Part shown: positions 47,501-50,500 of the stretch, one piece after another
Layout: each line of letters begins with the position of its first letter
Position numbering within the stretch: the first letter of the stretch is position 1
Assembly (NCBI RefSeq): GCF_001194135.2
Contig: NC_068986.1
Coordinates: 22,925,833-22,989,832 of the forward strand
Source of the DNA: Octopus bimaculoides
Taxonomy: Eukaryota
DNA: 64,000 nt
Direction: 5' to 3'
The notes under the pieces: model-generated
What the model was told of the DNA's origin: nothing
The model's input: only the letters and a program-made list of their open reading frames with translations
The model's database searches: none
Made by a program: the position numbers and the translations under genes

Positions 47501-50500
47501 ATTTCTAATGTAGAGTTAAAACCACAATTTTATGAAATCTATGGGGTGAAAAAGAGACAAAACCTGAGTACTTACCTGGACAAAACATGCCATCACCATT
47601 TTGGAATCCAATCATTTTGCACACTTTTTGAATAAGATAATGTTCAATCATTGTGAATGCTGGAGACACTTCATACGTATGTCTGTAAATGAATAATTAA
47701 CTTTTAATTAAGAATTAATTCCTTCTCTTCTGGGAAGATTCCATCTTAACAATGTGACCTACCAAACTACATGGCATACTTTAATTCTTTGACACACACC
47801 TTCATAATGTTGCTCTCTATTCTAAAATAATGTGTCACTGCCAGGTAAGCAAGGTACCAGGTAAGCAAGGTGTTGTAGCCTTTCATGTTTTGCAGCTTAA
47901 GACAAATCCCTTTATAGTCAACAATGGTTTCTAATTTTGGTACAAGGCCAGCAATTTCAAAGGAGTGAGTTAAGTTGATTACATCAACCCCTATCTTCTG
48001 AAGAAGATAGGTAGCGGCTATAGACTACTATAAAATTGAAGAGACCTAAAAGTTACTTTCATTTTTCTCACTCCTTCCAATAGTTCAATTGTATTAGAAG
48101 TTTTGCTTCTCTAACAGCATCCAGGAATCCCACTTTCTCAGTCTAGAAGCATCTTAAAACATTATGAGACTACCCACTTTTTCAAAAATTCAAGAAAATT
48201 GTACCGCAAACATTCCTGATATTATATTCTTTTATTTGTTTCAGTCGTTTGACTGTGGCCATGTTGGAGCACCACCTTTAGTCGAACAAGACATATTCTT
48301 TTTAAGCCTGGCACTTATTCTATCGATTGTTAAGTGATGGTGGGGGTGGGGACAAACACAGACACAAACATATATGCATATATATATATATGTATATATA
48401 TATATATATATATATATATATATATATATATATATATATATATATATATATATATATATATATATATATATATATATACATACAGGGTGTCCACAAAGTC
48501 TGGGTACATGGGGATTAACACATACTTTAAGAAATGATTATTTCATATATTTAATTGTTTATGTTATGATTTTATTTACTCCATGTATCCAGACCTTGTG
48601 GACACCCTGTATATATATATACGACAGGCTTCTTTCAGTTTCCATCTACCAAATCCACTCACAAGGCTTTAGTTGGCCTGAGGCTATAGTAGAAAACATT
48701 TGCTAGAGGTGCCATGCAGTGGGACTGAACTCGGAACCATGTGGTTGGTAAGTGAACTTCTTACCACACATCCATGCCTGCATTTTTTTTTATATATATG
48801 TATAAAGCATTGGATGATACAGGGCGATATAACAAGAGTTGTACAATGGGGAAAAAACCAGAAACAAACTTCTTAATTTGCAACTGGTTGGAATAATATT
48901 CATTTAAACGATACTTACAATGCTGTGTTGAGCGAGTCAGTGATCCATGATCCAGCCAAACCATATGGATCAACGAAACCATAAAGTTGGTTATAGAATC
49001 CTGGTTTACCTAAAATACAAAGAAATATTGCTTAATAGCATGCCGTCTCTGACTGAGTAGGAGAGACATGATCAAGGATACATAAGAACTACATTATCCA
49101 ATGTGTAGTGACACATTATAGCAGATGACTGTTATATGTTCAATGTCCGGAGTTTTATCCATGCATGCGCAGGGACTAGTTCCAGAAGGAATACAGGAAG
49201 AGTCTCATGCGCATGCGTAGAGTTTGACACCCAGCTTCGGCGCCTTTTCTCAGTCTCTTCGTTGACTGATCTCCGTCGAGCCAAGACGTCCAACAGAGCT
49301 CTCTCACATGTCAGCACCAGAGCTTCACAAATAACCACGGAAATCATTCAGAAGGCGTCTCAGTAACCGAGGGCGACGAGCTACCGAATTCCCTCCAAGC
49401 ATGAACTGAATTCCACTGTAAATAAATATTGTTATGTTGTTCAGAATCTGCGTTCCGTTGTTTCTTCTAGAAATTTAATGTACGGAAGTGGTGTACACCT
49501 AATGGTGTATAACCACTTCCCTACAAATGTATCTCTCACTTTTTAAGCCTTTGAACTTGTATGAGAGAGAGGTTTGGTTGCTGTTTCTAGCATAATCAGC
49601 ATATTATGTAGAGGTTCTTTTGTAAGTTTATATTAAACTATGTGTGGAGGCGCAATGGCCCAGTAGTTAGGGCAGTGGACTCGCGGTCATAGGATCGTGG
49701 TTTCCATTCCCAGACCGGGCGTTGTGAGTGTTTATTAAACAAAAACACCTAAAGCTCCACGAGGCTCCGGCAGGGGATGGTGGCGAACCCTGCTGTACTC
49801 TTTCACCACAACTTTCTCTCACTCTTACTTCCTGTTTCTGTTGTACCTGTAATTCAAAGGGTCAGCCTTGTCACACTATGTCACGCTGAATATCCCCGAG
49901 AACTATGTTAAGGATACACGTGTCTGTGGAGTGCTCAGCCACTTGCATGTTAATTTCATGAGCAGGCTGTTCCGTTGATCGGATCAATTGGAACCCTCGA
50001 TGTCATAAGCGACGGAGTGCCAACAACAATTAAACTATGTCCTCTTCCGCTGCTGCCACCGCCACCACGTCTGTTGCTATTTTTTTTTTTTTGCATGGAG
50101 GGAAAGGGTTTTCTTCAGCATGACACCTAACTACTTGTTGTGGTCACTTGTCATCTTCGTAAAGACCAGCTTTCATCACTTCCGCCTGGTATTTTATTTT
50201 CCTCAGTCTTTCAGTAACGTGAACTAGAAACTAATCATCAACATAGAAAAGTTTTTCCACAGACAGCTCGTCTTAAACACATCCATTATGACAAGCTATG
50301 CTTCAGAACTCTCGTAATCTAATAAGTCATACCATACAATTTTTCTGTTGCTAAGTGAGGCTGATGTTGTTCAACCCTAGGTCAACTCTGAACAAATAAA
50401 CCTACAACAACAAATGCATTCCAGTCATGACCATCCCATGTTTTTGTATTTGTTTTCAGAAACCGCGTGTTTAGGGGCAAGTTATCAAAAGTGTACATCC

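Follow-up and report, generated by a model that had tools for sequence, protein, structure and literature searches.

A group II decarboxylase gene of Octopus bimaculoides with a Tyr/Ala/His pocket triad, provisionally placed in a third lineage beside the CSAD and GAD groups

The stretch analysed here, referred to as the window, comprises 64,000 nucleotides of Octopus bimaculoides DNA (NCBI RefSeq assembly GCF_001194135.2, contig NC_068986.1, positions 22,925,833 to 22,989,832 of the forward strand), and all coordinates below count from its first letter unless another sequence is named. It carries a gene for a predicted decarboxylase dependent on pyridoxal phosphate (PLP), related to cysteine sulfinate decarboxylase (CSAD), GADL1 and glutamate decarboxylase (GAD), which lies on the minus strand between an ATG at 54508 and a TAA stop at 35392–35390. 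Exons were located by tblastn with family probes, including a GADL1 N-terminal probe, and then checked for splice sites and reading frame. Thirteen coding exons were recovered across 54508–35390; every exon boundary is AG..GT, and the exons join into a single open frame of 409 + 61 residues with no stop codons or frameshifts.

Coding exon 1 (54341–54508), found with the GADL1 N-terminal probe, encodes residues 1–56 (MNGYTNGH...HPKEML, with the ATG at 54508), and a splice acceptor upstream of it (ttacag followed by CAATAACAATG) implies an additional exon in the 5′ untranslated region. Exon 2 (50650–50743) ends in MSVKT plus a G. Exon 3 (48919–49009) contains Gln95 within NQL, Tyr97, Ala117 and the first two bases of the Leu118 codon, and thus the first two positions of the substrate-pocket triad discussed below; exon 4 (47576–47682) supplies the last base of that codon and the third triad position, H119-TYEVSPAF...GMFCP(G). 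The start of the predicted PLP-phosphate helix is in exon 5 (46416–46531, ending FASEG), which reads FMN where relatives have [IV]SN. Exon 6 (45741–45875, C-H194...LSLKQ) carries the His expected to stack on PLP, exon 7 (43768–43884, ending WLHV-D276) the Asp expected to pair with the PLP pyridine nitrogen, and exon 8 (42244–42308) ends with an additional AG. The putative PLP lysine is in exon 9 (40828–40906), within the NFHK motif of RVDSLAWN-F306-H-K308-MGNAP-M314, and the predicted catalytic-loop Tyr, Y337, is in exon 10 (39969–40050), which ends with an additional G. Exon 11 (39494–39611) encodes G-N353-KTIQCG-K360...MELS plus CA and is followed by exon 12 (38386–38440). The last coding exon (35390–35575) ends LGKDLQF before the TAA stop and includes a 7-residue loop together with the putative substrate-binding Arg of NFFR. 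Neither tandem paralogues nor further copies of the motif exons were found within the window.

One exon of about 28–30 residues, which in relatives reads ..C.N[IV]CFWYIP..LRG....EWW.E[VI], was not found by a search for CFW, WYIP and WW patterns in all frames of 38386–35578. Its counterpart in two relatives described below, that of the gastropod Elysia chlorotica and that on contig L007, lies directly upstream of the last exon, which is where a run of 296 N (35927–36222) falls in the octopus assembly, and this small exon is probably hidden by the gap. The window as a whole is AT-rich eukaryotic DNA with many microsatellites and 13 runs of N (for example 35927–36222, 38152–38161 and 45076–45253). 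Since the assembly is a draft, with one gap over a coding exon and two more in introns of the decarboxylase gene, automatic gene models of this locus are likely to be truncated or to skip exons.

The predicted protein matches Pfam family PF00282 with E = 2.9e-89 and 299.9 bits (cut-off 27) over profile positions 1–364 of 375. Alignment to sequences of known structure in the PDB gives 443 bits for human CSAD (2jis, E = 2e-131), 437 for mouse CSAD (6zek), 435 for mouse GADL1 (6enz), 414 for GAD65 (2okk) and 412 for GAD67 (3vp6); the E values for PF00282 and human CSAD exclude a chance match. In the alignment, the CSAD counterparts are K305 for K308, H191 for H194, the HVD Asp for D276, Y335 for Y337 and R466 for the NFFR Arg. 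The catalytic set that an initial annotation of this DNA had described as intact, namely H194 of HYS, D276 of HVD, K308 of NFHK, Y337 of YLFQ and the Arg of NFFR, is indeed all present. Elements that bind the acid group are retained as well: Gln95, the NFFR Arg and the NQL segment adjoining the first triad position. By its sequence, the gene is a group II PLP-dependent decarboxylase, with PLP binding and activity predicted. A reading of the protein as an aldehyde synthase, in the manner of the insect 3,4-dihydroxyphenylacetaldehyde synthase, was ruled out, since the protein retains both the loop Tyr and the PLP-stacking His.

The same annotation had drawn attention to a triad Y-x19-A-x-H formed by splicing 48919–49009 to 47576–47682. 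This is confirmed on the minus strand with canonical splice sites (acceptor ttttag and donor gtaagt for 49009–48919, ttacag and gtaagt for 47682–47576). The spliced product reads NQL-Y-x19-A-L-H-TYE, with exactly 19 residues between Y and A, and the other motif strings quoted at the time are all found in the gene model. The triad codons are TAT (48983–48981) for Y97, GCA (48923–48921) for A117 and CAT (47681–47679) for H119, and the codon for L118 is split (48920 and 48919, then 47682) by a phase-2 intron of 1236 bases. Elysia (locus L002) and L007 likewise have a phase-2 intron separating triad positions 2 and 3, and exon-skipping vertebrate gene models suggest that vertebrates share it too.

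This triad is reportedly what controls substrate selectivity in the family, as Agnello and colleagues are said to have described in 2013. The reference states against which it had been compared, F/S/Y for CSAD and S/N/F for GAD, hold in the PDB sequences (2jis and 6zek for CSAD, GAD65 and GAD67 for GAD), and Y/A/H matches neither. A point missed at that time is that GADL1 has Y/S/Y (Y-x19-S-x-Y in 6enz); Tyr97 is thus also the GADL1 state, and the octopus triad agrees with that of GADL1 at position 1 only. Arthropod enzymes carry a further mark, AP-Q-QCS, present in Ischnura, in Artemia and in the bivalve gene described below, the Gln of which we take to have a role in aspartate selectivity (compare Q377 of the Aedes aspartate 1-decarboxylase, ADC). 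The octopus protein has AP-M-QCS at this point and so lacks the insect-type ADC mark.

Relatives were gathered by an exhaustive search with the last exon, which is contiguous in the window, as query, and 116 of them could be scored for the loop between GYQP and NFFR. Its length is bimodal, 7 residues in 29 of the 116 and 5 in the remaining 87, and all CSAD, GADL1 and GAD sequences are among those with five. The octopus protein has the loop of 7 (PLPSMNKV before NFFR) and not the canonical one of five. Searches of indexed protein collections returned only exon-sized fragments, at no more than 72% identity, and no cephalopod sequence; these databases are poor in cephalopod proteins generally.

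One long-loop relative is RUS79759.1 of Elysia chlorotica (P0093), a partial gene model annotated as a hypothetical protein. Its genomic locus (L002) reads ...NQLYGDLDPYSQIGGWVTTTLNTNL followed by HTYEVSPAF..., which gives the triad Y/N/H, and also contains ...SISWNFHKF..., with NFHK as in the octopus gene. The deposited RUS79759.1 model skips most exons and joins the motif exon straight to a C-terminal exon. At 19565–19645 of the locus (RQTK01000429.1) the exon encoding ACWGGGTLLSKKHKHLMEG lies beside an N gap on the strand opposite to the rest of the gene, probably through a local mis-orientation of the assembly.

The closest relative found, 49.5% identical to the octopus protein, is a gene on a 1.3-Mb eukaryotic contig (L007) with Y/N/H, NTHK, QCGRK, EEWW and the long loop. 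Contig L001 holds a compact gene with NSHK, GGSFANIM..LAR and PLPSKNFVNFFR, and begins just past the triad. A full-length protein of a marine eukaryote (P0274) combines Y/N/H with NPHK, and P0145 has Y/N/Y. P0014, P0071 and P0013 are on contigs too short to reach the triad and stand outside the triad comparison. The triad of the lineage is therefore Y-x19-N-x-H, typical but, given Y/N/Y in P0145, not strictly defining; the octopus gene has its Tyr and its His, with Ala in place of Asn. Other fragments from Logan, JGI and ENA (P0001, P0003 and members of their clusters) have F/S/Y and F/G/Y, with NNRNCHNQLF... for GHPRFFNQLF, and one fragment of this type is labelled 'sulfinoalanine decarboxylase' by one source. 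In the literature on cephalopod and mollusc CSAD and GAD paralogues we found no paper describing the long-loop lineage in animals.

We built a neighbour-joining tree (Kimura distances, pairwise deletion, about 480 columns, 500 bootstraps, unrooted). It separates the octopus protein, Elysia, L001, L007, P0274, P0145 and P0081 from CSAD, GADL1, GAD65/67, Ischnura and Artemia with 98.6–99.8% bootstrap support, and the split keeps 85–100% after removal of the two longest branches, of Elysia, and/or of the C-terminal block with the indel. GADL1 and CSAD group together at 100%, without the octopus gene. The octopus protein is 39–50% identical to the sequences compared overall and 42–44% identical to each of CSAD, GADL1, GAD65/67 and the arthropod enzymes, whereas the latter are 50–62% identical to one another; it is therefore unlike an orthologue of any of them. 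Because the tree is unrooted, the long-loop group may be either a clade or a basal grade. An 'animal subclade' within it was considered and given up, as it had no bootstrap support. We think it probable, if by a modest measure and jointly with the functional reading given below, that the octopus gene belongs to a separate third lineage, sister to the CSAD/GADL1/arthropod-ADC and GAD groups, and we regard this lineage as provisional.

Elysia, L007 and L001 lie on the same side of the main split as the octopus gene and share with it the long loop before NF[FY]R; Elysia and L007 also share Tyr and His at triad positions 1 and 3 and the phase-2 intron between positions 2 and 3. The Pro of NPHK is lost in all of them as it is in the octopus gene, Elysia having the identical NFHK, L007 NTHK and L001 NSHK. 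They differ in the Asn at position 2 of Elysia and L007 and in the GDK and QCGR retained by L001 and L007 (in Elysia the corresponding exons fall in gaps), and the three are only 44–50% identical to the octopus protein.

The features of the octopus gene thus fall into two classes. Those shared with the lineage are the long loop, QCG.K and a triad beginning with Tyr and ending with His, to which the intron-bearing relatives (Elysia, L001 and L007) add the lost Pro of NPHK. Private to the octopus gene are Ala117, where the others have Asn, N353 (GNK), K360 (QCGK), M158 (FMN) and two conservative changes. The initial annotation had presented Y/../H, NFHK and similar traits as novelties of this gene, and this was not borne out: such traits recur in Elysia, L007, P0274 and P0145, with NFHK itself in Elysia. 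Ala at position 2 is found in none of the relatives examined, which have S, N or G there, and as GCA differs from both Asn codons (AAY) at all three positions, a single base error cannot account for it.

The loss of the NPHK Pro, of the phosphate-binding Ser (FMN), of the GDK Asp and of the QCGR Arg might be taken to mean that the gene is a weakly active, non-catalytic or pseudogenising copy. The terminal branch of the octopus protein is long (0.47, against 0.05–0.33 in canonical sequences), the protein departs at five columns that are constant in the first comparison set, one exon cannot be seen, and the protein databases searched hold no matching protein derived from transcripts. The missing exon, however, coincides with an N gap, and absence from databases poor in cephalopods is uninformative. 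The 13 exons have no stops or frameshifts and all their splice sites are canonical. NFHK is common to Elysia, and loss of its Pro also in L001 and L007 makes this an old, maintained state; the Tyr/His pocket, the longer loop and the Pro loss are shared with other animals including a gastropod, and are therefore conserved traits and not decay. The private changes are conservative. At otherwise invariant columns they number 4 of 62 in the octopus protein (L>M, A>V, D>N and R>K), 3 of 61 in GAD65, 3 of 39 in Elysia and 8 of 66 in P0145; they are thus no more numerous than in GAD65 and comparable to those in Elysia, and give no sign of decay. We consider an impaired copy very unlikely.

Another explanation is that the gene encodes an ordinary CSAD, that is, the usual cysteine sulfinate decarboxylase, an orthologue of vertebrate CSAD and of the CSAD1 type of oysters. 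Its top PDB match is human CSAD, automatic annotation usually names such genes CSAD or GADL1-like, and taurine is abundant in molluscs. Oysters have two genes named CSAD, and RNA interference against CgCSAD1 lowers taurine. Published oyster CSAD primers translate to SLGGCW, GDKSIQ, QCGRKNDV, PKVKEGMM and ASMMVGY, and these strings or close variants of them are held by Logan contig L012, recovered in the exhaustive search. L012 contains 0.7% C and therefore comes from bisulfite-converted DNA; we decoded it by treating each codon as the set of residues possible before C-to-T conversion. Read in this way, the bivalve CSAD1-type gene has the triad [Y/H]/S/[Y/H], the short loop (GYQ.DGD.VNFFR), AP-Q-Q-CS as in the arthropod enzymes, QCGRK and EWW. 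Canonical sequences are compatible with this gene at 55–56% of sites, and the octopus protein, Elysia and P0274 at about 51%.

At 2457–2771 of L012 the regions of octopus exons 3, 4 and 5 are fused in one exon, with no intron between triad positions 2 and 3. L012 is one of four such assemblies of bisulfite-converted reads with about 0.7% C (L012–L015, from Logan SRR22963495, SRR22963496, SRR22963500 and ERR10960651), and proteins called from them, such as P0136, are C-to-T-corrupted versions of the bivalve CSAD1-type gene that can be mistaken for divergent homologues.

QCGRK and EWW occur in both the bivalve gene and the third lineage, which would fit an ordinary CSAD, and for the same reason QCG.K and WW were dropped as marks that define the lineage. 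QCGRK and WW are probably ancestral, so that the putative marks of the lineage are reduced to the long loop and the Y/N/H pocket. With Ser at position 2, the short loop and AP-Q-Q-CS, and with its higher compatibility with canonical sequences, the bivalve gene is set apart from the octopus one, so that the latter is not the ordinary mollusc CSAD of the CSAD1 type, an identity that the initial annotation had named as one that would overturn its proposal. By these sequence features, at least bivalves have a canonical-type CSAD distinct from the octopus lineage.

The comparison with other known enzymes leads to the same separation. Vertebrate CSAD (2jis, 6zek) is like the octopus protein in its fold family, its catalytic residues, many intron positions and the top PDB score of 443 bits, but has F/S/Y, a 5-residue loop, NPHK and QCGRR, shows 43% identity and falls in the opposite group of the split. 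GADL1 (6enz), an aspartate and cysteine sulfinate decarboxylase, likewise has Tyr at position 1, with EVSP following the triad, but has Y/S/Y and the short loop and groups with CSAD. GAD65 and GAD67 (2okk, 3vp6) belong to the same family, and Asn at position 2 is common to GAD and most members of the third lineage; they differ from the octopus protein in S/N/F, where it has Tyr at position 1, in the short loop and in QCGRH. The protostome CSAD/ADC type (the Ischnura aspartate 1-decarboxylase/CSAD, the Artemia CSAD and the bivalve CgCSAD1/ChCSAD) is again of the same family but has F/S/Y ([Y/H]/S/[Y/H] in the bivalve gene), the short loop and AP-Q-Q-CS where the octopus protein has AP-M-Q-CS. 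Given the tree split at 85–100%, the loop of 7 and not 5 residues and a triad other than F/S/Y, an ordinary CSAD is most improbable.

Functional leads come from fungi and from mammalian structures. Candida albicans Csd1 (C3_00640W), a CSAD-related protein, is reported in a 2026 preprint to have the triad Y-x19-N-x-H; its deletion nearly abolishes taurine, and Csd1 is required for growth on cysteate and not on cysteine sulfinate (bioRxiv 10.64898/2026.08.27.747329). Tyr at position 1, His at position 3, the PLP Lys and the C-H-Y segment are common to Csd1 and the octopus protein; Csd1 differs in being fungal and in having Asn at position 2, and among Y/N/H enzymes it alone has functional (genetic) data. 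The fungal protein that best matches human CSAD, YALI0C16753p of Yarrowia, decarboxylates cysteate and cysteine sulfinate, and GAD activity has also been reported for it. The paper on the structure of mouse CSAD describes position 1 as Phe94 in CSAD, Tyr in GADL1 and Ser in GAD, the bulky residue blocking larger substrates; the Ser of GAD opens the pocket for glutamate.

We favour, as the more probable account though with no great margin of confidence, a functional gene for a third-lineage group II PLP decarboxylase of the acidic-amino-acid (GAD/CSAD) superfamily, with short acidic amino acids as its likeliest substrates. In such an enzyme His194 would stack on the cofactor, Asp276 would partner the pyridine nitrogen, and Tyr337 on a mobile loop would act as proton donor after loss of CO2. 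The substrate would be held by the Arg of NFFR and Gln95, and its side chain would enter a pocket lined by Tyr97, Ala117 and His119. Tyr97 may shut the pocket to long side chains, as Phe94 does in CSAD and Tyr in GADL1, and His119, potentially cationic, could pair with a distal acidic group. It is the retention of Gln95 and the NFFR Arg, with a bulky Tyr97 and a potentially cationic His119, that points to a preference for short acidic substrates. The preferred ones would be cysteate, cysteine sulfinate and possibly aspartate, with taurine, hypotaurine or beta-alanine as the products. The private change from Asn to Ala at position 2 would remove one hydrogen-bonding group and enlarge the pocket, and Ala117 would then shift preference or affinity among short acidic substrates rather than bring new chemistry. 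The longer loop by the substrate Arg and F306 beside the PLP lysine may reshape the site further.

A competing proposal is that Y/A/H and the other pocket-side changes redirect the enzyme beyond cysteine sulfinate, cysteate, aspartate and glutamate, towards an uncharacterised amine. Besides the reported control of selectivity by the triad, it can draw on the absence of Ala from position 2 in the relatives, on the private N353, K360 and M158 in segments that are conserved in all others, and on a lineage that is biochemically unexplored in animals. On the other hand, two of the three pocket residues are the norm of the lineage, conserved between the gastropod and the octopus gene, Gln95, the NFFR Arg and NQL are all kept, and the sole functional evidence for a Y/N/H enzyme concerns taurine and cysteate. 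Although a truly new substrate is possible, it is less supported than a preference for short acidic amino acids, and we rate it as unlikely; the 'shifted or new' substrate first proposed stands as an inference. The wider proposal of an active paralogue with shifted specificity stands in part. The gene falls outside CSAD and GAD (85–100% bootstrap), is intact and catalytically complete, and is probably active; a recent shift private to the octopus gene does not hold, the traits being lineage-wide. A further extension, which we likewise rate as unlikely, is that the long-loop Y/N/H lineage is an unrecognised third animal acidic-amino-acid decarboxylase with its own physiological substrate, and that the Ala117 variant has moved further, to a substrate or product outside those of CSAD, GADL1 and GAD.

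Several points weigh against a functional third-lineage enzyme acting on short acidic amino acids. The tree is an unrooted distance tree of few, partly fragmentary sequences, and its bootstrap values leave the order within the lineage unsettled. One exon is invisible through an assembly gap. F306, M158, N353 and K360 are changes near the cofactor and could lower activity. F94S by itself gave mouse CSAD no GAD activity, and therefore the triad is not the whole determinant of specificity. Csd1 and the Yarrowia enzyme are tied to the long-loop lineage by inference from the published triad alone, and, given the GAD activity of the Yarrowia enzyme, Tyr at position 1 (if that enzyme has one) need not exclude glutamate. 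We found in the literature no assayed animal enzyme of the long-loop lineage, and no expression data for the octopus gene.

Elsewhere in the window, exons of a fibrillar collagen gene lie on the plus strand, upstream of the decarboxylase gene and on the strand opposite to it, at 9207–9608, about 11.7–12.0 kb, 23127–23438 and 25280–25600. One of these exons encodes a Gly-X-Y triple helix (Pfam Collagen, E = 9e-7), and the C-terminal propeptide is represented by two segments (COLFI, E = 5e-10 and 8e-13). Between the collagen and decarboxylase genes, three adjacent plus-strand open stretches of 95, 185 and 128 amino acids (31387–31671, 31859–32413 and 32417–32800) are without a Pfam match and look like a decayed transposase or other mobile-element open reading frame. 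Within the decarboxylase gene, intron 4 contains a plus-strand open stretch (46811–47209) that by eye resembles the C-terminal end of a reverse transcriptase of the long interspersed nuclear element type and has no Pfam match at E ≤ 0.01. At 48400–48480 and 48590–48610, intron 3 contains a long (TA)n microsatellite flanked by an inverted pair (GGGTGTCCACAAGGTCTGG ... CCAGACTTTGTGGACACCC), which suggests a small insertion of foldback type or resembling a miniature inverted-repeat transposable element. No RNA family was found within the window with Rfam.

Taurine, hypotaurine, beta-alanine and gamma-aminobutyric acid are major osmolytes, antioxidants and transmitters of marine invertebrates, and their synthesis in animals is usually credited to three enzyme types, GAD, CSAD and GADL1/ADC. 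At least some molluscs appear to carry an extra conserved member of the family with a Tyr/Asn-or-Ala/His pocket, a longer loop and an altered PLP-lysine motif, and outside vertebrates the selectivity triad is far more varied (Y/N/H, Y/N/Y, F/G/Y, Y/A/H) than the two textbook states. Automatic annotation tends to label such genes CSAD or GADL1-like, and metabolic reconstructions may in this way assign pathways wrongly. If there is indeed a third lineage, one possibility is a dedicated cysteate-to-taurine enzyme, which would provide molluscs with a taurine route that bypasses hypotaurine. Should the lineage be specific for cysteate or the sulfinate, it would bear on how taurine is made in taurine-rich animals; should it not, it would be a candidate source of an unassigned amine.

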